Assembly: GCA_964187785.1 (NCBI GenBank)
Contig: OZ076421.1
Coordinates: 41,106,001-41,170,000 of the forward strand
Length of the DNA stretch: 64,000 nt
Source of the DNA: Amphiscolops sp. MND2022
Lineage: Eukaryota
Direction of reading: 5' to 3'
Below are positions 38,367 through 55,944 of this stretch, piece by piece. The position numbers and the translations under genes were made by a program. Each line of letters begins with the position of its first letter. Position 1 is the first letter of the stretch. The notes beneath the pieces are model-generated. The model was given only the letters and a program-made list of their open reading frames with translations. It did no database searches and was not told the origin of the DNA.

Positions 38367-38646
38367 AAGGTTTGACCTCTGTCCTTTCGACCAGAAAATT
38401 TCGACCTATTTACAGCCACCCGTTTTTTGGATGATTCAGTAACAGAGTTCCGCAAAATTCAAGTGATTGTCGACTGTCTTCTGTTCGGACTGCAGGTACA
38501 TGGAACATATTGGAACAAAATCCGCAAAATCCGTGTATCCCAGTCGACCGTTAGAACTGTGGTTGTATAAAATGTTGTTTTTATGAAATGATTGAATTAA
38601 ATTTGATAATGACAAGTCAGTTTTTATTCAGTGAGAAGAGTAGAAC

Positions 38647-39271
38647 GAACTTGACTCTTGAAATAAAGTGGGGGAAGTGTGAAGAAACGTGGCAGAAAAT
38701 AAACAGTTCAAACTTGTTCATACGTAATTTCGGTTACCAGTCACTTGGTTTATTACCATTTGGCTTAATTTTTTCGTCGAGTCTTTTGGCTTAAAAATTT
38801 TAAGCCAAGTGACCACAAAATTAAACCAACTCCATTCCAACTCAAGGAATAACTATATCAACTCCCGGAAATGTCATAATGTGGGGCATATGCGGTGTAT
38901 GCACGCTCGCCCTCACCGTCGCAAAGACCAGCTCCCACTGCGATCGCTTCGCGTTTTTCGTTCCCGCTAGGTCTTTGCTCCTGTTCGACCTCGCTTAGCA
39001 AGATGGGAATATAAGCGGCCCCAAGGGGCCGCAGGGCACTAGAGGAAATGGGGACATACCCGAGGAGTACTTGATATGACATGTTATAATAATACGCTGA
39101 CTACGTTATAAAGATAAATTCGACAAAATCTACCACGTGTTTTCAACTAAGTGGTTTTAAGCCAAATGGCATTAAGCAAAGAGACAATTTACCGTAATTT
39201 CATGTGTTGAATTCTGATTGATTAATGCAAAAGTTAGCATCACAAACGAATATTTTGAGAAAGCATCAACA
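38647..39271 (-). repeat. BEL-2 3' LTR (interrupted by MITE A)
   Basis: Begins TGTTGATGC on minus at 39271; aligns to 55745-55898 after removing 38731-39200. Confidence 0.85.
38731..39194. mobile_element. MITE family A, copy 2, inserted in the BEL-2 3' LTR
   Basis: CGGTtacc...tttACCG flanked by a perfect TAATTT duplication (38725-38730, 39195-39200); absent from the BEL-2 5' LTR. Confidence 0.88.
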
Positions 39272-39329
39272 TAAGTCGCCCGGTTTGAAGTCCTCCAATA
39301 AAAATTGGAGTTCTATTTTCAGATACTTC

Positions 39330-40123
39330 ATGGCACAATTCGTTGATACCGACAATGAGAGGGAGAGAAGTGGGAGGAAACGGCGCATAGATCCCTTCAA
39401 ACAGAGCCACGGATATGGTCTGCGAGCCAATGATTCTGCGAAGTTGCCGGAGTTTGAGATCTTCCTCAAGTAGCTTAAGTCGTCATACTTGACTCCAGTG
39501 CCTCTAAAGACGCTCCAGCAGGTGCTTGAAGATCCTCGAGAGTTGGCGGTCATTCAGGAGCGAGTGGCAACACTTTCTTCAGAAGATGAAGAGACTCTAC
39601 GGAAGTTGCATTCGTTGGATGATCTTCCAGAGACTTGGAAGGGAGGTGTGCTGTTGTCAAATAGTGTTGTCAACCCCTTCTAGAGTCGTGGAGAAGTATA
39701 GTTTCAGAGGCTTCCATGTTGAAGTTGATGAGGAAGGATATTCTTTTTCTTTAACGAGATACTCTCGTTACTGGGAGAAAGATTTGGATGTACTGTCTGC
39801 CTTCACCAACAGGGAAGAAGCTGGATGCGGCTGCACGAGATTGTAGAAAGTCCATTTCTGAGACTATCAATCTTGTGCAAGGTCTCTCTAGGATGCAGGC
39901 CCGTCAGGTGTCTTGGACTCTTCTGGAGCCTGGATGCACCATGTACTTCCCGTACCTCTTCTTGCACTCTGTTTGGACGGACGTACAGTCTGGGTCAGTG
40001 TGCACGATGTACAGCTGCGAAAGGACGTTCGAAGAAGGATGGCGTACTGAGCAGATGAGGCGACCTGACCAGTACTTGGCTCTCGGGTGCCGGAGGGGTG
40101 AAGAGTTTGGCTCCAGTTCCTGA
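39330..40123 (+). pseudogene. JmjC-like (2-oxoglutarate/Fe(II) oxygenase, cupin fold) ORF of ~264 codons, antisense to BEL-2; 1 stop and 2 frameshifts
   Basis: SFRGFHVE (His 39715-39717, Glu 39721-39723), LVTGRKIWMYCLPSPT (Lys 39779-39781), LLEPGCTMYFPYLFLHSVWT (His 39965-39967); N-terminal GRKRR; AATAAA at ~40202. Confidence 0.75.
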
Positions 40124-40519
40124 TAGAGGTAGGTATATCAGTCTTCTTCATTTCTCTTGAAAAACTAGGTGATCAGTAACCATTTAAAGCTACAAGACCG
40201 AAATAAAAGCGGTAAAATGCATCTTGTGATAAGTTGAAATGGTATATGAAGTAGTCAGCAGTCTAGTAAAAGGCATAATTTTTGATCATTAGATAACAAT
40301 GACTTGAACTAGGATGATGAATTGAAAATTTCCATAAGCTAGAGGCTAATAGGGGGCGAATACCCAATTTCCCGTGGTCCGTATCCTAAACGGGTCATGA
40401 GGGGTACTTTTTGCGACTGTGGGTTGACAGAAAAAAAATTATAACGAAATTAACCAAAGTTTTCTGTCCCTTTCTCACCTCAAGGACCACTGGAGGATCT
40501 GTCTACCAATGATTCAGCT

Positions 40520-42100
40520 AGCGGTAGCTTTCTGAGTTTCATTATAGGTCGATTGAAGTTTTCTTTGACGTTTTGATCTCTGCTACCCTCGGAATTTCAT
40601 CATTCCTTTTATATAGTTTCGAGATTCTGGCAAGTTTCCACACCAGTGGGGCTTCGATGACTTCAGCAACCAGAACAAGGTCGCCCACGTTTATACAAGG
40701 TCCAATGGGGAACCATTTCTTTCGTATTTGAAGTTCCACGAGGTAGTCTCTGCTCCAAGAGATCTTGTTGCTTCCAGAAATCTTGTTGAATTCGTTGAAG
40801 GAGTTTTAGTCTCTGTCCGGCAGGTACATCTATAACTTCTCTGGCTATTGAAAGTAGCGACTCTTCAATAATGAAGTGTGCGGGCGTTTTAGCTCGGCAG
40901 TCATTGGGGTCATTGGACATTGGAAAGAGTGACCTTGAGTTTATGATTGCTTCAATTTGCTGAAGAATTGTCAGGAGTTATTCATATTTTAAAGTTTGAT
41001 GTCCGAGTATGCGTCTCAGAAGTCTCTTCATACTCTTTACAGCGGCTTCCCATATACCACCGAAGTGTGGCGCTCGAGGCGGAATCGTAACCCATTCAGT
41101 GCCTTGACTTGTCAAGTGTCTCAGAAGTTGTTTACCATCAGCGGTTTCTTTATTAAGAAGTGCTTGAATTCGTAGGAAATCATTTCTGGCCCCAATGAAG
41201 TTGCTTCCATTGTCTGTTATAATCTTCTTAGGTGCTCCTCTTCTTGAAGTGAAGCGTTTAAGAGCCATTATGCAGTCCTCCTTGGTTAGTTTTGAAACGA
41301 ACTCCAAATGAATGGGTTCTGTGACTAGGCAAATGAATACAGCTATATAGATCTTGGGATTTTTCTTGGCCTTGTCCTTGAAATGTCCAGCGAAATCTAT
41401 TATGCAGGTGAAAACGCCCTAGCCGGGGTCACGCGTTCGCTAGGTAGGTCAGCCATTAGTTGAGGAGTAGACGTGAAAAAGGAAACATTTGAAACAATTC
41501 TTGTTGAAACTATTTACCGTTTTTCTGCCGTTAACCAGTCAGAATTGTATTGAGAGTCAATATGCCTCCCCCATGAAGTGTAACTTCATGGCAGTGACGA
41601 ATTAGAAGCTCCTTTAGAGGTGATTCCTTGGCAATCAGGTAGGGAAACTTCTTGTCTTCAAGCAAACTTGTTTGTGCGAGACGACCTCCGACACGAATGA
41701 CATAAATTTCTGAATGCCATGAAAGGGTGACAGGTTGAGGAGAGAGTATATTTGTGTCATTTCATTATGCATTTCAGAATTGCGTACTCTTCTGGGAATG
41801 TTTGTATCTGATCTTGTCTAATGATGTTTGCAGTTGCAATTCTACGAGTTTCGGTTTCTGCTAGTTGTGGAGTATGACAGTCGATTCTTGTTCTCAGCGC
41901 ATTGATGGACCGTATGACGTTGCTGACGATGTTGTTGAGCTTATTGAAGCTGCTGAATTTTTCAATCGGCAGAACTTGAGTACTTGAATTGAATCTCTGG
42001 ATGCTTGTGAGTGTCGTATCTTCACAGGAGTAAATGTTCTGTTTTTGGTCTTGGAAGTTTCCTTCAGCTCATGTTTCTCTGGTAGACAGATGAAGAGTGT
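40520..42100 (-). pseudogene. BEL-2 integrase region
   Basis: DFAGHF, ALKRFTSRRG..ITDNGSNFIGA, PPRAPHFGGIWEAAVKSMK, VGDLVLV..WKLARI. Confidence 0.92.
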
Positions 42101-45100
42101 TCATCTAGTTGAAGCCAATAAGATTTTGGGTGTGGTAACCATTCAGGGCCAGACGACCAAAGGCGAAAGTTAACGGTATCTTCAACTGAGAGCCCCCTGA
42201 GGCCAGACCTGCAGTGTTGTCATTTGTTGGAACATGATTCCAGCTATCTTTTTTGATAATTTCTTTTTTGGAAGAAACTCTGTTTGCTACAAAGGTGGTC
42301 AAAGTTCGCGGGAGTTGCGATAACCACTGGAGAGTGATGATGGAGTCTCTCCATGCGTGAAAAGATTGTTTACGACCAGTTATATGAAGAGTTGACATGG
42401 TAGCTTCAAACAGTTTTGCGGCTAAGTGTGCACCACAAAACTAAAGACAAGGCATTGAGACAACTTTCACTGGGGCAACCTTCGTTTTAGAAAAGATCAA
42501 ATACCGAACTCACATTTCCAAAGACATCAGTGGTACGAGCATAGATGACGGCAGCATATGCCTTCAAGGCATCGCAGAAAACATAGAGTTGAAAGTCTTG
42601 AATTGCATTTTTTACAAGTGCACGCGGCATTGTGATTTGGGCGAACTATTTCAGCTCAGAATAGTACTGTAAAAACTGATGCTTGATCGGTTCCAGAACC
42701 AGCTCGTCCCGCTTGACTCCAGTCAACCAAATTTGCTGAAGTAGAATTTTGAAGACGATGATGATGGGAGATAGCCAACCCATTGGATCATACACTTCGG
42801 CTGTAGCTGAAAATAGACTGCCTTTGGTGAGCACTGTCACAGCAGGTAGATCCGTTTTGAAACATATGATGTCCAGGTTTGGTTTCCAAATCATTCCTAC
42901 AGCCTTTATTTAGTAGTCGTCTGACAAGATTTCACATTCGTTAGCTGTTTCTCGCAGCTCATCGGGTAATTCCTTAATCAATGAAGAACAGCTTGATACC
43001 CATTTACGCACTGGGAATCCATATTTGAGGAGTTCGGAATGAAGATCTGCAATCAGTTTTCGTGCATCTTCAACAGAATTTTCTCCGTCGAGTAAGTCAT
43101 CCACATAGAAAGACTGCTCCAAGTGATATTGGACCTGTGAGTTGCAAGTTCGCTTGGCAGCTTCTTTTTGACAGCTCGTGGAATGAAAGGATGATTATGC
43201 AATGCCGTATGTCACTATTGTTATGCGAAAAAAATGCACAGGTATGTCCTTTCTTTCACGCCAAATGATCCGATGAAAATCCTTGTCTGATACGTCTAAA
43301 GCAACCTGTCTGTACATTTTCTCTATATTAGCTGACAAAGCAACAAGTACCACTCAAAAGCGCAAAATGATGGAACAAAGATCGTCCTGTATTGTTGGAC
43401 CAATCATCAGAGTGTCATTCAAAGACTTTCCAGTGGAAGTCTTCGCAGATCCATCGAAGACAACACGAAGTTTTGTAGTGGTCGAATCGTCTTTGAATAC
43501 GCAATGGTGGGGTAGGTAGAAGCTTTTGCTGTCCTCGCAGCGTGTCTCGTTCGCTGGAACCTCCTCTATATGCCCATTTCCCACAAATTGATCGATGAAT
43601 GACTCGTAGCGTGATTTGAGCTCTGGATCTGAATCTTGACGTTTTTCGTGTGACTTGAACTTTATGTTTGCTTGATCTAAACTTTCTCCCAACTGACAAT
43701 CTTACTTGAAGGGTAAAGTTACAGTGAAACAATTGTCTTGATTTTTGTCGTGTTAACAAAATGTTGTTCACAGGCTTCTTCTTCCTTGGAGAACTGACGA
43801 CCTTTTGGAATTTCCTCCAATTCCCAAAATTGCTTTATTCTCTTTTGATAAATTCTTGTTTGTAGGAAACTCTGTTTGCTACAAAAGTGGTCCAAGTTCA
43901 CGGGAGTTGCGATAACCACTGGAGAGTGATGGTGGAGTCTGTCCATGCGTGGAAAAGTTGTTCAAGACCAGGTATAGGAAGAGTTGACATGGTAGCTTCA
44001 AGCAGTTTTGCGGCTAAGTGTGCACCACAAAACTAAAGACAAGGCATTGAGACAACTTTCACTGGGGCAACCTTCATTTTAGAAGTGATCAAATGCGAAC
44101 TCACAATTCCTAAGACATCAGTGGTACGAGCATAGATGACGGCAGCATATACCTTCTCTGAGGCATCGCAGAAAACATGGAGTTGAAAGTCTTGAATTGC
44201 ATTTTTTACAAGTGCACGCGGCATTGTGATTTGGGCGAACTATTTCAGCTCAGAATAGTACTGTAAAAACTGCTGCTTGATCGGTTCCAGAACGAGCTCG
44301 TCCCATTTGACTCCAGTCAACCAAATTTGCTGAAGTAGAATTTTGAACACGATGATGATGGGAGATAGCCAACCCATTGGATCATACAATTTGGCTGTAG
44401 CTGGAAAAAGACTGCCTTTGGTGAGTACTGTCACAGCAGGTAGATCCGTTATGAAACAAATGATGTCCAGGTTTGGTTTCCAAATCATTCCTACAGCCTT
44501 AAATTAGTAGTCGTCTGACAAGATTTCGCATTCGTTAGCTGTTTCTCGCAGCTCATCGGGTAATTCCTTAATCAATGAAGAACAGCTTGATACCCATTTA
44601 CGCACTGGGAATCCATATTTGAGGAGTTCGGAATGATGATCTGCAATTAGTTTTCGTGCATCTTCAACAAAATTTTCTCCGCCAAGTAAATCATCCACAT
44701 AGAAGGACTGCTCCAAGTGATATTTGACCTGTGAGTTGCAAGTTCGGTTGGCAATTTCTTTCAGACATCTCGTGGAACGAAAGGATGAATATGCAATGCG
44801 TTATGTCACTATTGTTATGCGAAAAAAATGCACAGGTACGTCCTTTCTTTCACGCCAAATGATCCGATGAAAATCCTTGTCTGGTACGTCTAAAGCAACC
44901 TGTCTGTACATTTTCTCTATATCAGCTGACAAAGCAACAAGTACCACTCGAAAGCGCAAAATGATTGTAGAAAGATCTTCCTGTACTGTTGGACCAACCA
45001 TCAGAGTGTCATTCAAAGACTTTCCAGTGGAAGTTTTCGCAGATCCATCGAAGACAACACGAAGTTTTGTAGTGGTCCAATCCTCTTTGAATACGCAATG

Positions 45101-48100
45101 GTGGGGTAGGTAGAAGCTTTTGCTGTCCTCGCAGCGTGTCTCGTTCGCTGGAACCTCCTCCATATGCCCAGTTTCCACAAATTGATCGATGGATGACTCG
45201 TAGCGTGATTTGCGCTATGGATCTGAATCTAGACGTTTTTCAAGTGACTTGAACCTTCTGTTTGCTTGATCTAAACTTTCTCCCAACTGACAATCTTACT
45301 TGAATGGTAAAGTTACAGTGAAGCGGTTGTCTTGGTTTTTTGTCGTGTTAACAAAACGTTGTTCACAGGCTTCTTCTTCCTTGGAGAACTGACGACCTTT
45401 TGGAATTTCCTCCAATTCCCAAAATTGCTTGAGTCTCTTTTGATAAATTCTTGTTTGTAGGAAACTCTGTTTGCTACAAAAGTGGTCCAAGTTCACGGGA
45501 GTTGCGATAACCACTGGAGAGTGATGGTGGAGTCTGTCCATGCGTGGAAAAGTTGTTCAAGACCAGGTATAGGAAGAGTTGACATGGTAGCTTCAAGCAG
45601 TTTTGCGGCTAAGTGTGCACCACAAAACTAAAGACAAGGCATTGAGACAACTTTCACTGGGGCAACCTTTGTTTTAGAAGTGATCAAATGCGAACTCACA
45701 TTTCCAAAGACATCAGTGGTACGAGCATAGATGACGGCAGCATACACCTTCTCTGAGGCATCGCAGAAAACATCGGGTTGAAAGTCTTGAATTGCATTTT
45801 TTACAAATGCACGCGGCATTGTGATTTGGGCGAACTATTTCAGCTCAGAATAGTACTGTAAAAACTGCTGCTTGATCGGTTCCAGAACGAGCTCGTCCCA
45901 CTTGACTCCAGTCAACCAAATTTACTGAAGTAGAATTTTGAACACGCTGATGATGGGAGATAGCCAACCCATTGGATCATACAATTTGGCTGTAGCTGGA
46001 AATAGACTGCCTTTGGTGAGTACTGTCACAGCAGGTAGATCCGTTATGAAACAAATGATGTCCAGGTTTGGTTTCCAAATCATTCCTACAGCCTTAATTT
46101 AGTAGTCGTCTGACAAGTTTTCACATTCGTTAGCTGTTTCTCGCAGCTCATCGGGTAATTCCTTAATCAATAGAACAGCTTGATACCCATTTACGCACTG
46201 GGAATCCATATTTGAGGAGTTCGGAATGATGATCTGCAATCAATTTTCGTGCATCTTCAACAGAATTTTCTCCGCCAAGTAAATCATCCACCTAGAAGGA
46301 CTGCTCCAAGTGATATTGGACCTCTGACTTGCAAGTTCGCTTGGCAACTTCTTTCAGACATCTCGTGGAATGAAAGGATGATTATGCAATGCCGTATGTC
46401 ACTATTGTTATGCGAAAAAATGCACAGGTACGTCCTTTCTTTCACGCCAAATGATCCGATGAAAATCCTTGTCTGGTACGTCTAAAGCAACCTGTCTGTA
46501 CATTTTCTCTATATCAGCTGACAAAGCAACAAGTACCACTCGAAAGCGCAAAATGATGGAACAAAGATCGTTTTGTACTGTTGCACCAACCATCAGAGGG
46601 TCATTCAAAGACTTTCCAGTTGAAGTCTTCGCAGATCCATCGAAGACAACACGAAGTTTTGTAGTGGTCGAATCGTCTTTGATTACGCAATGGTGGGGTA
46701 GGTAGAAGCTTTTGCTGTCCTCGCATCGTGTCTCGTTCGCTTAAACCTCCTCCATATGCCCAGTTTCCACAAATTGATCGATGAATGAGTGGTAGCGTGA
46801 TTTGAGCTCTGGATCTGAATCTAGACGTTTTTCAAGTGACTTGAACCTTCTGTTTGCTTGATCTAAACTTTCTCCCAACTGACAATCTTACTTGAATGAT
46901 TAAGTTACAGTGAAGCGGTTGTCTTGGTTTTTTGTCGTGTTAACAAAATGTTGTTCACAGGCTTCTTCTTCCTTGGAGAACTGACGACCTTTTGGAATTT
47001 CCTCCAATTCCCAAAATTGCTTTAATCTCTTTTGATAAATTCTTGTTTGTAGGAAACTCTGTTTGCTACAAAAGTGGTCCAAGTTCACGGGAGTTGCGAT
47101 AACCACTGGAGAGTGATGATGGAGTCTGTCCATGCGTGGAAAAGTTGTTCAAGACCAGTCTATTGAAGAGTTGACATGGTAGCTTCAAGCAGTTTTGCGG
47201 CTAAGTGTGCACCACAAAACTAAAGACAAGGCATTGAGACAACTTTCACTGGGGCAACCTTCGTTTTAGAAGTGATCAAATGCGAACTCACAATTCCTAA
47301 GACATCAGTGGTACGAGCATAGATGACGGCAGCATATACCTTCTCTGCGGCATCGCAGAAAACATTTAGTTGAAAATCTTGAATTGCATTTTTTACAAGT
47401 GCACGCGGCATTGTGATTTGGGCGACCTATTTCAGCTCAGAATAGTACTATAAAAACTGCTGCTTGATCGGTTCCAGAACGGGCTCGTCCCACTTGACTC
47501 CAGTCAGCCAAATTTGTTGAAGTAGAATTTTGAACACGATGATGATGGGAGATAGCCAACCCATTGGATCATACAATTTGGCTGTAGCTGGAAGTAGACT
47601 GCCTTTGGTGAGTACTGTCACAGCAGGTAGATCCGTTTTAAAACATATGATGTCGAGGTTTGGTTTCCAAATCATTCCTACAGCCTTAATTTAGTAGTCG
47701 TCTGACAAGATTTCACATTCGTTAGCTGTTTCTCGCAGCTCATCGGGTAATTCCTTAATCAATGGAACAGCTTGATACCCATTTACGCACTGAGAATCCA
47801 TATTTGAGGAGTTCGGAATGATGATCTCCAATCAATTTTTGTGCATCTTCAACAGAATTTTCTCCGCCAAGTAAATCATCCACATAGAAGGACTGCTCCA
47901 AGTGATATTGGACCTGTGAGTTGCAAGTTCGCTTGGCAACTTCTTTCAGACATCTCGTGAAATGAAAGGATGATTATGCAATGCCGTATGTCACTATTGT
48001 CATGCGAAAAAAATGCACAAGTACGTCCTCTCTTTCACTCCAAATGATCCGATGAAAATGATCCGATCATTGTCTGGTACGTCTAAAGCAACCTGTCTGT

Positions 48101-51100
48101 ACATTTTCTCTATATGAGCTGACAAAGCAACAGGTACCACTCCAAAGCGCAAAATGATGGAGTAAAGGTCGTCCTGTACTGTTGGACCAACCATCAGAGT
48201 GTCATTCAAAGACTTTCCAGTGGAAGTCTTCGCAGATCCATCGAAGACAACACGAAGTTCTGTAGTGGTCGAATCATCTTTGAATACGCAAGGGTGGGGT
48301 AAGTAGAAGCTTTTGCTGTCCTCGCAGCGTGTCTCGTTCGCTGGAACCTCCTCCATATGCCCAGATTCCACAAATTGATCGATGAAAGACTCGTAGCGTG
48401 ATTTGAGCTCTGGATCTGAATCTAGAGGTTTTTCAAGTGCCTTGAACCTTCTGTTTGCTTGATCTAAACGTTCTCCCAACTGACAATCTTGCTTGAAGGG
48501 TAATGATACAGTGAAACGGTTGTCTTGGTTTTTTGTCGTGTTAACAAAATGTTGTTCACAGGCTTCTTCTTCCTTGGAGAACTGACGACCTTTTGGAATT
48601 TCCTTCAATTCCCAAAATTGCTTTAAATCAAAGTCGACTGATGATGGGAAGGAACTAACGCATGTCACTGATTTGCCAGGATTTGATCCACAGATTGTCC
48701 ACCCGAATACTGTTTTGCGTGCATAGATACCATCACACACTTTGGTTCTTTCGTTTCCAATGACTTGTTCATAAAGATCAATTCCGATGATGATATCAAT
48801 ATTGGAAGGTTTTGCGAAATTTGGGTCAGAAAGCTAACGGTATCTTCAACTGAGAGCCCCCTTGAGGCCAGATCTGCTGGGTTGTCATTTTTTGGAACAT
48901 GATTCCAGCTATCTCTTTTGATAATTTCTGGTTTGTAGGAAACTCTGTTTGCTACAAAGGTGATCCAAGTTCGTGGGAGTTGCGATAACCACTGGAGAGT
49001 GATGGTGGAGTCTGTCCATGCGTGGAACGATTGTTCAAGACCAGTTATATGAAGAGTTGACATGGTAGCTTCAAGCAGTTTTGCGGCTAAGTGTGCACCA
49101 CAAAACCAAGTCAAGGCATTGAGACAACTTTCACTGGGGCAACCTTCGTTTTAGAAGTGATCAAATGCGAACTCACATTTTCAAAGGCATCAGTGGTACG
49201 AGCAAAGATGACGGCAGCATATACCTTCTCTGAGGCATCGCACAAATCATGGAGTTGAAACGAACTATTTCAGCTCAGAATAGTACTGTAAAAACTGCTG
49301 CTTGATCGGTTCCGGAACAAACTCGTCCCACTTGACTCCAGTCAACCAAATTTGCTGAAGTAGATTTTTGAACACGATGATGATGGGAGATAGCCAACCC
49401 AATGGATCATACAATTTGGCTGTAGCTGAATTAGGACTGCCTTTGGTGAGTATTGTCACAGCCGGTAGATCCCTTTTGAAACATATGATGTCCAGGTTTG
49501 ATTTCCAAATCATTCCTACAGCCTTTATTTAGTAGTCGTCTGACAAGATTTCACATTCTTTAGCTGTTTCTCGCAGCTCATCGGGTAATTCCTTAATCAA
49601 TAGAACAGCTTGATACCCCTTTACGCACTGGGAATCCATATTTGAGGAGTTCCCAATGATGATCTGCAATCAGTTTTCGTGCATCTTCAACAGAACTTTC
49701 TCCACCAAGTTAATGATCCACATAGAAGGACTGCTCCAAGTGATATTGGACCTGTGAGTAGCAAGTTCGCTTGGCAACTTCTTTCAGACATCTCTTGGAA
49801 TGAAAGGATGATTATGCAATGCCGTATGTCACTATTGTCATGCAAAAAAAATGCACAGGTACGTTCTTTCTTTCACGCCAAATGATCCGATGAAAATGAT
49901 CCGATCATTGTCTGGTACGTCTAAAGCAACCTGTCTGTACATTTTCTCTATATCAGCTGACAAAGCAACAAGTACCACTCAAAAGCCCAAAATGATGGAA
50001 CAAAGATCGTCCTGTATTGTTGGACCAACCATCAGAGTGTCATTCAAAGACTTTTCAGTGGAAGTCTTCGCAGATCCATCGAAGACAACACGGAGTTTTG
50101 TAAAGGTCGAATCGTCTTTGAATACGCAATGGTGGGGTAGGTAGAAGCTTTTGCTGTCCTCGCAGCGTGTCTCGTTCGCTGGAATCTCCTCCATATGCCC
50201 AGTTTCCACAAATTGATCGATGGATGACTCGTAGCGTGATTTGAGCTATGGATCTGAATCTAGACGTTTTTCAAGTGACTCGAACCTTATGTTTGCTTGA
50301 TCTAAACTTTCTCCCAACTGAAGATCTTACTTGAAGGGTAATGTTACAGTGAAACGGTTGTCTTGGTTTTTTGTCGTGTTAACAAAATGTTGTTCACAGG
50401 CTTCTTCTTCCTTGGAGAACTGACGACCTTTTGGAATTTCCTCCAATTCCCAAAATTGCTTGAGTCTCTTTTGATAAATTCTTGTTTGTAGGAAACTCTG
50501 TTTGCTACAAAAGTGGTCCAAGTTCACGGGAGTTGCGATAACCACTGGAGAGTGATGGTGGAGTCTGTCCATGCGTGGAAAAGTTGTTCAAGACCAGTTA
50601 TATGAAGAGTTGACATGGTAGCTTCAAGCAGTTTTGCGGCTAAGTGTGCACCACAAAACTAAAGACAAGGCATTGAGACAACTTTCACTGGGGCAACCTT
50701 TGTTTTAGAAGTGATCAAATGCGAACTCACATTTCCAAAGACATCAGTGGTACGAGCATAGATGACGGTAGCATATACCTTCTCTGAGGCATCGCAGAAA
50801 ACATCGAGTTGAAAGTCTTGAAATGCATTTTTTACAAGTGCACGCGGCATTGTGATTTGGGCGAACTATTTCAGCTCAGAATAGTACTGTAAAAACTGCT
50901 GCTTGATCGGTTCCAGAACGAGCTCGTCCCACTTGACTCCAGTCAGCCAAATTTGTTGAAGTAGAATTTTGAACACGATGATGATGGGAGATAGCCAACC
51001 CATTGGATCATACAATTTGGCTGTAGCTGGAAATAGACTGCCTTTGGTGAGTACTGTCACAGCAGGTAGATCCGTTATGAAACAAATGATGTCCAGGTTT

Positions 51101-54095
51101 GGTTTCTAAATCATTCCTACAGCCTTAATTTAGTAGTCGTCTGACAAGATTTCACATTCGTTAGCTGTTTCTCGCAGCTCATCGGGTAATTCCTCAATCA
51201 ATGGAACAGCTTGATACCCATTTACGCACTGGGAATCCATATTTGAGGAGTTCGGAATGATGATCTCCAATCAATTTTTGTGCATCTTCAACAGAATTTT
51301 CTCCGCTAAGTAAATCATCCACATAGAAGGACTGCTCCAAGTGATATTGGACCTGTGAGTTGCAAGTTCGCTTGGCAACTTCTTTCAGACATCTCGTGAA
51401 ATGAAAGGATGATTATGCAATGCCGTATGTCACTATTGTCATGCGAAAAAAATGCACAAGTACGTCCTCTCTTTCACGCCAAATGATCCGATGAAAATGA
51501 TCCGATCATTGTCTGGTACGTCTAAAGCAACCTGTCTGTACATTTTCTCTATATGAGCTGACAAAGCAACAGGTACCACTCCAAAGCGCAAAATGATGGA
51601 GTAAAGGTCGTCCTGTACTGTTGGACCAACCATCAGAGTGTCATTCAAAGACTTTCCAGTGGAAGTCTTCGCAGATCCATCGAAGACAACACGAAGTTCT
51701 GTAGAGTTCGAATCATCTTTGAATACGCAATGGTGGGGTAAGTAGAAGCTTTTGCTGTCCTCGCAGCGTGTCTCGTTCGCTGGAACCTCCTCCATATGCC
51801 CAGTTTCCACAAATTGATCGATGAAAGACTCGTAGCGTGATTTGAGCTCTGGATCTGAATCTAGACGTTTTTCAAGTGCCTTGAACCTTCTGTTTGCTTG
51901 ATCTAAACGTTCTCCCAACTGACAATCTTGCTTGAAGGGTAATGATACAGTGAAACGGTTGTGTTGGTGTTTTGTCGTGTTAACAAAATGTTGTTCACAG
52001 GCTTCTTCTTCCTTGGAGAACTGACGAACTTTTGGAATTTCCTTCAATTCCCAAAATTGCTTTAAATCAAAGTCGACTGATGATGGGAAGGAACTAACGG
52101 TTGTCACTGATTTGCCAGGATTTGATCCACAGATTGTCCACCCGAATACTGTTTTGCGTGCATAGATACCATCACACACTTTGGTTCTTTCGTTTCCAAT
52201 GACTTGTTCATAAAGATCAATTCCGATGATGATATCAATATTGGAAGGTTTTGCGAAATTTGGGTCAGAAAGCTAACGGTATCTTCAACTGAGAGCCCCC
52301 TTGAGGCCAGATCTGCTGGGTTGTCATTTGTTGGAACATGATTCCAGCTATCTCTTTTGATAATTTCTTGTTTGTAGGAAACTCTGTTTGCTACAAAGGT
52401 GATCCAAGTTCGTGGGAGTTGCGATAACCACTGGAGAGTGATGGTGGAGTCTGTCCATGCGTGGAAAGATTGTTCAAGACCAGTTATATGAAGAGTTGAC
52501 ATGGTAGCTTCAAGCAGTTTTGCGGCTAAGTGTGCACCACAAAACCAAAGTCAAGGCATTGAGACAACTTTCACTGGGGCAACCTTCGTTTTAGAAGTGA
52601 TCAAATGCGAACTCACATTTCCAAAGGCATCAGTGGTACGAGCATAGATGACGGCAGCATATACCTTCTCTGAGGCATCGCACAAAACATGGAGTTGAAA
52701 CGAACTATTTCAGCTCAGAATAGTACTGTAAAAACTGCTGCTTGATCGGTTCCGGAACAAGCTCGTCCCACGTGACTCCAGTCAACCAAAGTTGCTGAAG
52801 TAGATTTTTGAACACGATGATGATGGGAGATAGCCAACCCAATGGATCATACAATTTGGCTGTAGCTGAATTAAGACTGCCTTTGGTGAGTATTGTCACA
52901 GCAGGTAGATCCCTTTTGAAACATATGATGTCCAGGTTTGATTTCCAAATCATTCCTACAGCCTTTATTTAGTAGTCGTCTGACAAGATTTCACATTCTT
53001 TAGCTGTTTCTCGCAGCTCATCGGGTAATTCCTTAATCAATAGAACAGCTTGATACCCATTTACGCACTGGGATGCCATATTTGAGGAGTTCCCAATGAT
53101 GATCTGCATTCAGTTTTCGTGCATCTTCAGAATTTTCTCCGCCAAGTAAATGATCCACATAGAAGGACTGCTCCAAGTGATATTGGACCTGTGAGTAGCA
53201 AGTTCGCTTGGCAACTTCTTTCAGACATCTCTTGGAATGAAAGGATGATTATGCAATGCCGTATGTCACTATTGTCATGCAAAAAAATGCACAGGTACGT
53301 CCTTTCTTTCACGCCAAATGATCCGATGAAAATGATCCGATCATTGTCTGGTACGTCTAAAGCAACCTGTCTGTACATTTTCTCTATATGAGCTGACAAA
53401 GCAACTGGTACCACTCCAAAGCGCAAAATGATGGAGTAAAGGTCTTCCTGTACTGTTGGACCAACCATCAGAGAGTCATTCAAAGACTTTCCAGTGGCAG
53501 ATCCATCGAAGACAACGCGAAGTTTTGTAGTGGTCGAATCGTCTTTGAATACGCAATGGTGGGGTAGGTAGAAGCTTTTGCTGTCCTCGCATCGTGTCTC
53601 GTTTGCTGGAACCTCCTCCATATGCCCAGTTTCCACAAGTTGATGGATGAATGACTTGTAGCGTGATTTGAGCTCTGGATCTGAACCTAGACGTTTTTCA
53701 AGTGCCTTGAACCTTCTGTTTGCTTGATCTAAACGTTCTCCCAACTGACAATCTTGCTTGAAGGGTAATGATACAATGAAAAGGTTGTCTTGGTGTTTTG
53801 TCGTGTTAACAAAATGTTGTTCACAGGCTTCTTCTTCCTTGGAGAACTGACGACCTTTTGGAATTTCCTTCAATTCCCAAAATTGCTTTAAACCAAAGTC
53901 GACTGATGATGGGAAGGAACTAACGGTTGTCCCTGATTTGCCAGGTTTTGATCCACAGATTGTCCACCCGAATACTGTTTTGCGTGCGTAGATACCATCA
54001 CACACTTTGGTTCTTTCGTTTCCAATGACTTGTTCAAAAAGATCAAATCCGATGATGATATCAATATTGGAAGGTTGTGCGAAATTTGGGTCAAA
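42100..54095 (-). repeat. Tandem array of seven decayed BEL RT-RNase H segments (junctions ~43838, 45433, 47025, 48831, 50464, 52270)
   Basis: Repeating ORFs at 1592-1595-bp spacing (44033/45628/47220; 42646/44240) and 3439-bp spacing (48000/51439; 48665/52104). Motifs QFWEL, YLPHH, ADIEKMYRQ, FYVDD, KLYDP, DASEK, SKTKVAP in most units. Confidence 0.95.
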
Positions 54096-54099
54096 AAGC

Positions 54100-55668
54100 T
54101 TGATCTTTGGAAACTTGGTTAGCTCTGGTATTTTTAGCGGACTGGAAGGAATAACAGCTGGCAGTCGTGGTAAAACGAATGCTGAAACATTGTAGGGGAT
54201 GGAATTTTCATTAAAAATTGTCCGATCAGTCTTTCCACGGGTAGTTGATTTTGATGTACATCCAATGCCATTGATAATTATCTCGGATTTGAGTCGTTTC
54301 TGTTGGAAACGTTGCACACAGTCCTCGCTAATAAAGCTCAATTCCGATCCACTATCCAGAAGTGCTCGACACTTGTGTGCAATGCCAGTTTTCGAAAAGA
54401 CTGACACTTCCACTGTAGGGAGGAAGTGTTTCGCAAAAAATATCCCCTCGTAACGAAAATGCCAATTGACCACGGGGCTCTGTACAGTTTGCTCACCAGG
54501 GGTACGGAGCAGGGTATGTGCAGTTTGTGACACTTCTGACACCTTGATTTGAAGGTCTTAGAATTAGGACCTGGTCGTAAACAGTTGAAACACAACTTCT
54601 TCGTCTTGATAAATTTCTGTTTGTCGTCATAACTCATAATCTTGAATTGATCACACTGGTGTAGTTTATATCCCTCGGAGCAGTTGATGCAGGAAACGCT
54701 AGCAGTAGAGCCTTAGTAACCTTGAACCTTCTTTGAATTTTCTTGACTAACTTGCTTGCTGATGCTGAGGCTTCGGGCCCTATTCTCAAGAAATTGCTTT
54801 AGGCTGTCCATGCTCTGAGCATCATCACTCTTGCTGTGAAGTTCCCATCTTCTGCGTCTCTGGGTGTCCAACTTTTTTGCTATGATGTGAACCGAGATGA
54901 AATCTGATGTCCGACATCTAATCTCATTCCTTGTAGGGCCATCGTGTTTTCCATGAAATTGCTAATCAATTTCCGAAGCTGATCAGGTGATTCTTCTTTG
55001 ATCGGACGAAAATCAAAGATGGCTTCTAGATTCGTTTGTTCGAATACCTGTCTTGGAGAAGTTTTTTGGCAACTTCGTAATTCGCACTGGAAGTAGGTAA
55101 ATGCAATAGAAGACGAGCAGGCTCATCTTTCAGTGGAGACTTAAGTTAGTGGAGAGTTTCTGAATGTTGCTAAGCGTACGATTGCTGTCCACGGTGCTGT
55201 TGAATGTCTCTGAAAATGGTGTCCACACAGAGTTTTTCCCAGTGAATATAGGAAGACTGAGTTTTGGCAGCTTTAGTCCAGAAGTGAATGTTTGTTGATT
55301 ATCTTCAGTCAGAGTCTGTGGTTGTCTCGGGGCGGCTTGAGCACCCTCTTCGATCCGTTCTTTGGCCATTTCAAGCGCTTTGATCGTTGTTTTGATCCTG
55401 AGATCATTATCATCACTTCTAGACTTTTCAGTTTCGATCTCTTCCGAGATTGTGTCACTTTCAGTCAGTTCGTTGATGATGCGTTTGTTTAGTTCTTCAA
55501 TCTTGGATACTTGCTCCTTGCACCTTTCAAGAAAACACTTGATCTTTGAGATTTCCAGCAGCGTTAGTGTCCTAGGTTCCTTCTTAAGGATTTCTTTCAT
55601 TGAGTTTTCTGTCCTGGTAATTGTTCCGAGATGGCCAGATCTTGTTCTTTTCAAAGCTTCAGCCATTT
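54100..55668 (-). pseudogene. BEL-2 gag and protease
   Basis: MAEALKRTRSGHLGTITR; LPKLSLPIFTG..WTPFSETF (Pao gag); KLCFNCLRPG, CQKCHKLH (Zn knuckles); ALLDSGSELSFIS (protease). Confidence 0.9.
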
Positions 55669-55727
55669 CAAATTTAATAATCCTTCTGTTCAGTAGATTG
55701 AATTTCCAAGTTTCGAACTTCCTGGGT

Positions 55728-55898
55728 AATCGGTGCACCAAAACAAACTTGAGTCTTGAAATAAAGTGGGAAAGTGTGAATAAACGTGGCAGAAAATCAA
55801 CAGTTCAAACTTGCTCATTTGTAAAATCATGTGTTGATTTCTGATTGGTTAATTCAAAAATTAGCATCACAAACGAATATTTTTAGAAAGCATCAACA
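55728..55898 (-). repeat. BEL-2 5' LTR (55745-55898) and PBS (TGGTGCAccgat, tRNA-Gly-like, 55728-55740)
   Basis: TGTTGATGC start; TGGTGCA 4 nt after the aligned LTR end; gag ATG ~60 nt downstream. Confidence 0.8.
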
Positions 55899-55944
55899 AG
55901 AACCAAGGTTTTTAAAAAGATGCGATAATATACAGCTTCAAAAA

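Follow-up and report, generated by a model that had tools for sequence, protein, structure and literature searches.

A predicted JmjC-fold oxygenase gene carried antisense to gag-pol by a family of BEL/Pao retrotransposons

Can an LTR retrotransposon carry its own JmjC oxygenase? The question is raised by a plus-strand open reading frame (ORF) at one end of a retrotransposon in the window, by which we mean the whole stretch of 64,000 nucleotides of Amphiscolops sp. MND2022 DNA analysed here. From the motifs of this ORF, the initial annotation had proposed that a BEL/Pao element encodes, antisense to its pol, a JmjC-like demethylase or hydroxylase, plausibly an anti-silencing factor. We are highly confident that a real, selected, transposon-borne gene for a JmjC-fold protein exists. 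In this BEL/Pao family, a gene of ~290 codons lies on the opposite strand between the end of the integrase and the 3' LTR, and its intact copies are predicted, from motifs and structural models, to encode a minimal JmjC-fold Fe(II)/2-oxoglutarate oxygenase. What the enzyme would act on is discussed with graded confidence below.

The window element and the gene family to which its ORF belongs

By mapping a related element of the same genome onto the window, we found that positions 38558-55898 of the minus strand are an old, degraded BEL/Pao LTR retrotransposon (Table 1). Elements were assigned to BEL/Pao by a gag with DUF1759, a pol with Peptidase_A17, RT, RNase H and integrase (H2C2, rve, DUF5641), LTRs of the form TG...CA and a short target-site duplication (TSD). 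The window element has DUF5641, rve and Peptidase_A17 on the minus strand, LTRs with TG...CA termini (the LTR is 243 bp long in the family) and a 5-bp TSD, and complete domain sets were found in related loci. The BEL/Pao identity first proposed is borne out by the three pol domains, and the TSD boundaries and the inner edge of the 3' LTR proved correct. The element is an old, dead copy.

Two further features of the window element were noted. The 461-bp MITE-like insertion that splits its 3' LTR is without counterpart in all 19 other copies of the element, and a related sequence is present in locus L042 of the same genome (C8:31.64 Mb). An RT/RNase H block of 1.6-1.8 kb occurs in seven tandem copies (window 40413-55743), one of which lies inside 40413-43837; the units correspond to element positions ~2900-4500/4700 and are 88-92% identical to the reference element.

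Table 1. Features of the BEL/Pao element and its antisense gene, in window positions (strand + or -; a dot where no strand applies)
Feature	Position	Strand	Remarks
TSD AGAAC, 5 bp	38553-38557 (left) and 55899-55903 (right)	.	Identical five bases on both sides
3' LTR (relative to gag-pol), outer part, starts TG	38558-38731	-	91% identity to LTR positions 3-175 of a related element
MITE-like insertion, 461 bp, splitting the 3' LTR	38732-39192	.	9-bp TSD CGTAATTTC; imperfect terminal inverted repeats of ~37 bp
3' LTR, inner part, ends ...CAACA	39193-39271	-	Inner edge at 39271
Splice-acceptor-like pyrimidine tract and CAG directly 5' of the ATG	39312-39323	+	Putative function, from sequence
Degraded JmjC-like gene, antisense to gag-pol	39330-40123	+	ATG 39330, stop 40121-40123
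AATAAA, candidate poly(A) signal of the antisense gene	40202-40207	+	
BEL/Pao pol, 3' part (DUF5641, rve, RNase H/RT and Peptidase_A17 pieces)	40545-43837	-	Many frame breaks
DUF5641 of pol	40545-40739	-	Pfam domain
rve of pol	40981-41307	-	Pfam domain
Peptidase_A17 of pol	42649-42894	-	Pfam domain
Remaining internal region: six more tandem RT/RNase H blocks, then upstream pol and gag	43839-55741	-	
5' LTR, partial (without ~86 bp)	55742-55898	-	86% identity to the 3' LTR

The JmjC-like ORF lies on the plus strand, with the end of the integrase on one side and the inner edge of the 3' LTR on the other, and converges on the minus-strand pol, with the location and orientation originally reported. 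Comparison with another copy identified it as a degraded version of a 291-codon gene. It is damaged by a stop in frame (39471-39473), by additions of one base near 39670 and of ten near 39750, and by the loss of ~93 bases at ~39685, upstream of the H-x-D motif. We considered whether the 91-93 extra bases of other copies could be an intron and rejected this: they are in-frame coding sequence there, so that ~31 codons have been lost from the window copy by deletion. The initial annotation, which had repaired one stop and two frameshifts, was near the mark but underestimated the damage to the frame. The three motifs it quoted are all present, namely FHVEV (with its H-x-E at ~39714-39722, where the family has H-x-D), the lysine motif GRKIW (~39770-39784) and LFLHSVW (~39958-39978), which contains the second histidine. 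The window copy cannot make the protein and is a dead example of its family.

Taken by itself, this broken copy, whose C-terminal piece matches the Pfam model JmjC_2 weakly (E=0.11; 12.5 bits against a cut-off of 22), would fit a host JmjC gene that was captured once or left a processed pseudogene, or else an antisense ORF that arose by chance, in either case with no role for the element. The copies elsewhere in the genome argue strongly against such an origin. Searching the 1.07-Gb genome from which the window comes gave 60 matches at the DNA level and, with a profile of the protein family, at least 151, many of them without stops. All 19 loci retrieved by DNA similarity have the ORF region joined without a break to the integrase region and the LTR, and four of the 19 copies retain the uninterrupted 291-codon frame; both the intact copies and the linkage to BEL elements that had been proposed as checks were thus found.

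Another 15 loci of more distant relationship were also retrieved, three of them sister copies of one lineage. In 11 divergent lineages of this genome, the JmjC-like ORF faces a converging long gag-pol ORF at a distance of 70-500 bp, and the lineages with an adjacent pol are only 21-48% identical in the JmjC-like protein. Wherever a pol adjoins the gene (these 11 lineages and one metagenome contig), it is of BEL/Pao type and convergent, with Pfam confirmation of the BEL/Pao domains among the divergent lineages in L051 and L053 only. The metagenome contig (L031) bears a 31%-identical copy converging on a BEL-type integrase. A contig of another assembly (L021) bears an intact copy with 66% identity, whose neighbours are two ORFs recognised by eye only, one resembling an integrase C-terminus and one resembling gag. 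In ERZ25074608, a Pfam-annotated Pao pol lies beside three divergent versions of the gene (three loci); we rejected these contigs as independent support, as they come from the same or a near-identical species (the pol of L032 is that of L035). The P0010 contigs from ocean metagenomes showed no recognisable pol within ~1.2 kb of the gene.

Phylogenies were built of the JmjC core and of the neighbouring C-terminal part of the integrase; the groups with strong support, (L051,L053) and (L038,L039,L041), are the same in both. The trees disagree once, with moderate support, over where L035 belongs, which would allow for some exchange between lineages, and the branches of the JmjC-like gene are about twice as long as those of the integrase. 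The broad congruence of the trees indicates that, for the most part, gene and element have been passed on together from a time before these lineages diverged. Together with the purifying selection and the distance from all cellular proteins described below, the number of copies, the invariably convergent BEL/Pao pol and the congruent trees make a one-off pseudogene or chance ORF extremely improbable; the ORF belongs stably to the element family.

In L021, gag closely follows the ORF, and we therefore suspected that the ORF of the window family might lie within the LTR. This was rejected, since the LTR is only 243 bp long in a tandem pair of the same genome (L022+L025, C10:40044934-40057936), which consists of three such LTRs and two internal regions flanked by the TSD ATTAA; the ORF is internal to the element and starts ~60 bp inward of the 3' LTR. 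The middle LTR of this pair is common to both window-family elements, the units are 99.9% identical, and both lack the 3' end of the JmjC-like ORF through an identical deletion of 407 bp. In one very divergent lineage, the ORF may sit in a long LTR. Here, L054:3551-5655 (C7:47.11 Mb) and L055:4429-6669 (C11:17.02 Mb) have in common a 2.1-kb block containing an ORF with the motifs WHVDF...GWKLW...AHCV; the block adjoins the gag start of a BEL/Pao element in L054 and has no element nearby in L055. Near the latter block, L055:8159-9304 is a host gene for a SPOUT1/C9orf114-type RNA methyltransferase. The named homologues nearest to it come from two acoels, Symsagittifera roscoffensis and Convolutriloba macropyga (52-54% identity), and this single gene points to an acoel-like marine worm as the probable host.

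A divergent, predicted JmjC fold with conserved candidate catalytic motifs

Residues are numbered here as in the copy in L004. Across an alignment of 17 family members (down to 21% identity), D162, G176 and K178 are invariant and H160, W180, H240 and V242 nearly so. The most conserved positions of the family are thus those of a predicted iron triad H-x-D...H (H160, D162 and H240) and of a putative 2-oxoglutarate lysine (K178). The two histidines are 80 residues apart and K178 follows H160 by 18 residues, a spacing typical of JmjC enzymes. When the family profile was compared with the PDB, PHF8 was the best match (E=0.006), followed by NO66 and KDM7, and the alignment placed F-H-x-D on FHID, G-R-K on GEK and L-H-S-V on IHAV, PHF8 positions established as its iron ligands and 2-oxoglutarate lysine. 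The four positions first picked out in the damaged window copy are therefore conserved family-wide. A single-sequence search of the PDB had returned an aminotransferase only, which we dismissed as a chance match.

Sequence relatives are few. An exhaustive search of 1.84 billion representatives gave only 36, and a profile search of a word-indexed protein collection gave nothing beyond the relatives of the single-sequence searches, 17 word-indexed and 36 exhaustive; such collections hold few eukaryotic repeat ORFs. None of the tested members reached the threshold of the curated Pfam models considered (JmjC PF02373, JmjC_2 PF08007 and Cupin_8 PF13621). Sub-threshold matches were obtained among the 17 family members to Cupin_8 (seven), JmjC_2 (eight) and JmjC (two), with a best E-value of 8e-6 for Cupin_8 among the relatives and a score of 19.7 bits for L051 against a cut-off of 27.4. 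The intact window-family proteins (four copies) matched no Pfam model even at E<=10.

An AlphaFold2 model of the family protein (pLDDT 78, pTM 0.77) shows 291 residues that form a JmjC fold, with a double-stranded beta-helix core, and a disordered N-terminus. Foldseek found 415 matches in the PDB at E<=0.001, led by KDM7A, FIH, PHF2 and KDM2A, and the best 50 are all JmjC enzymes. JmjC proteins only were also returned by structure searches of Swiss-Prot models and AFDB clusters, and the ESM Atlas gave a TM of 0.63 to a JHDM1 cluster. With VIA-align, 232 residues were aligned to KDM7A (Z 14.5, rmsd 4.0) and 441 chains scored at Z>=8, among them PHF2 (14.4), KDM2A (13.7), PHF8 (13.6), FIH (13.5) and JMJD6 (13.0). 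Language-model features pointed to JmjC/Cupin_8 clusters (score 0.95). The proposal of a JmjC protein therefore holds at the level of fold and family profile but not at that of Pfam, whose thresholds the window-family protein does not reach. We conclude that, as judged by its predicted fold and motifs, the protein belongs to the JmjC superfamily and not to a curated family. Because no structure match, cellular proteins included, exceeds ~15% identity, the models point to a divergent JmjC family of its own rather than a recent copy of a host demethylase.

The disordered N-terminus includes a conserved basic motif, S-G-R-x-x-R-x-P. Four of the divergent lineages (L036, L038, L039 and L041) share little else in their N-terminal 100 residues, and in them the motif is encoded ~60 bp inward of the 3' LTR. 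A role in nuclear import or in docking is possible.

Which class of substrate does this fold suggest? The KDM2/KDM7 group ranks best in profile search, Z and TM, with FIH and JMJD6 within ~1.5 Z units, all at 9-15% identity. The JHD helical domain and the reader modules (PHD, CXXC, F-box/LRR) of the KDM2/KDM7 type are absent from the 291-residue protein, and a Pfam search of the intact copies found no PHD, CXXC or Tudor reader domain. Demethylases and protein hydroxylases are nearly tied in Z, and the fold would suit either class of substrate. The enzyme could be a protein or RNA hydroxylase of the FIH/JMJD6/TYW5 type acting on a host factor or on the element's own Gag or integrase. Consistent with this, FIH, JMJD6, JMJD5 and TYW5 score almost like the demethylases, the hydroxylase-type models Cupin_8 and JmjC_2 are matched more often than JmjC, and a chromatin reader domain is lacking. 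We nevertheless consider a hydroxylase unlikely, given that the best profile matches are PHF8 and KDM7, that the KDM7, PHF2 and KDM2 groups lead by both Z and TM, and that nothing points to a target.

Candidate signals of antisense expression, selection and possible roles

The sequence TTTTCAG lies a few bases before the ATG in all lineages examined, four very different ones, so that the acceptor-like sequence first seen in the window is a conserved feature; it resembles a splice acceptor to which a 5' exon, located in the LTR or beyond it, could be joined. The AATAAA noted after the window stop likewise has a counterpart (AATAAA or ATTAAA) in six of seven other lineages. In L038 and L041, GT-AG introns of 108 and 109 nt interrupt the gene at one conserved position and separate an N-terminal exon from the JmjC core; in L041, the two exons do not share a reading frame, and only splicing brings them into one. 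The same GT-AG signals stand at that position in L036 and L039, where the first exon is frameshifted, and the intron is missing from the window family and its nearest relatives. Such an intron can persist in a retroelement only where it is antisense to the genomic RNA, which then cannot splice it. Its retention is thus an indirect sign of expression from the opposite strand, and it is a natural counterpart of the intron-marked reporter cassettes with which retrotransposition is scored.

Transcript data were scarce. A seawater metatranscriptome contained a few short contigs at 95-98% identity, which give neither strand nor level, and three other runs that match the gene behave like genomic DNA. 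One 95-nt contig of the metatranscriptome joins position 2703 of L004 directly to position 1406 (segments 1406-1451 and 2655-2703). This backward joint encloses the whole JmjC-like ORF and may reflect a tandem arrangement, a related but rearranged sequence or a chimera.

Selection, whose measurement had been recommended at the outset, was estimated against the foreign copy with 66% identity. Differences at codon positions 1, 2 and 3 number 84, 61 and 134, and dN/dS is 0.23 at a dS of ~1.2 (Nei-Gojobori), which indicates that the gene is under purifying selection and that the protein sequence, not the RNA alone, is constrained. Comparisons between very young copies give a dN/dS of ~1, which decay after insertion would predict and which adds no support.

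These observations bear on whether the protein is a catalyst at all. It could instead bind methylated chromatin or regulate the element's own transcription without catalysis, or the antisense transcript itself could be what matters. PHF2-like JmjC proteins can be weakly active. Plant Retand elements have antisense ORFs, possibly regulatory, in the same place (PMC11963269). We regard a non-catalytic protein or a functional RNA as quite improbable: the dN/dS value speaks against a role of the RNA alone, and the conservation of the positions aligned to the PHF8 iron ligands and 2-oxoglutarate lysine above all others argues for catalysis.

The overall explanation that we prefer, by a small measure, is an element-borne antisense JmjC oxygenase that has its own transcript and is nuclear, with demethylation as its leading role. 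Transcription of the gene would run against that of gag-pol, starting in the 3' LTR or reading through it, and the transcript would use its own splice and poly(A) signals. The protein would be imported into the nucleus, where it could act in trans for all copies of the element. There, Fe/2-oxoglutarate-dependent removal of repressive lysine methylation, of the KDM7/PHF8/KDM2 kind, would take place over the element copies, and the loss of this methylation would counter host silencing. The histone-demethylase, anti-silencing role taken separately is a tentative proposal from fold and motifs. A fuller version is doubtful at present, namely that an animal BEL/Pao clade encodes an active histone lysine demethylase, made from an antisense spliced 3' LTR transcript, that erases H3K9 or H3K27 methylation on its copies.

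Comparison with known systems

The element protein resembles the KDM7/PHF8/PHF2 and KDM2 (JHDM1) demethylases, its best structural and profile matches, in its modelled double-stranded beta-helix with JmjC-type flanks, in the H-x-D...H triad with 80-residue spacing and in the lysine 18 residues after the first histidine. It differs from them in being retrotransposon-encoded, 9-15% identical and below Pfam thresholds, and in consisting of 291 residues without PHD, CXXC, F-box or JHD. With the hydroxylases FIH, JMJD6, JMJD5 and TYW5 (Z 12.7-13.5), it shares the architecture of a small stand-alone JmjC/Cupin_8 protein, and among Pfam models its family comes near to Cupin_8 and JmjC_2; the sequence relationship to these enzymes does not extend detectably beyond the motifs, and the element protein is carried by a transposon.

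The position and orientation of the gene have precedents. In HTLV-1, transcription of HBZ starts in the 3' LTR and a splice lies immediately before the coding exon, a layout that the conserved TTTTCAG before the ATG of the JmjC-like gene would fit. Plant Retand/Tat Gypsy elements also have antisense ORFs between pol and the 3' LTR (PMC11963269). The products of HBZ and of the Retand/Tat ORFs are DNA-binding or regulatory (bZIP and TRP28, respectively), whereas the JmjC-like product is predicted to be an enzyme, and a start in the LTR is here a prediction.

Mobile elements with enzymes acting on epigenetic marks are rare, and full-text literature searches found no LTR retrotransposon with a JmjC cargo, in agreement with the initial annotation, which knew of none. 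A selected JmjC oxygenase in many BEL/Pao lineages of one animal would offer a directly testable case of a retrotransposon countering chromatin silencing with its own enzyme. If the demethylase reading is true, it would be a transposon-encoded enzymatic anti-silencing factor in an animal, and this BEL/Pao family may bring its own tool against chromatin silencing.

The known cases are VANC, the TET/JBP enzymes and an orchid AlkB. In orchids, Ty3/Gypsy elements have a fixed extra ORF for an AlkB-type 2-oxoglutarate oxygenase, proposed to counter host control (PMC9289625). There too an LTR retrotransposon lineage bears an additional Fe/2-oxoglutarate oxygenase ORF; that cargo, however, has the AlkB fold, is an m6A RNA demethylase and was acquired recently by a plant Gypsy lineage (PMC9289625), whereas the gene described here has a predicted JmjC fold, belongs to animal BEL/Pao elements, is antisense, and is old and spread over many lineages. 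VANC of the Arabidopsis VANDAL elements is a transposon-encoded anti-silencing factor (PMC5735166), and TET/JBP dioxygenases are carried by fungal DNA transposons (PMC12730594). Both are alike in concept, as mobile elements with a factor that removes repressive epigenetic marks, and TET/JBP enzymes are in addition Fe/2-oxoglutarate dioxygenases, as is predicted for the JmjC-like protein. They differ in belonging to plant and fungal DNA transposons, in targeting DNA methylation and in their folds and families.
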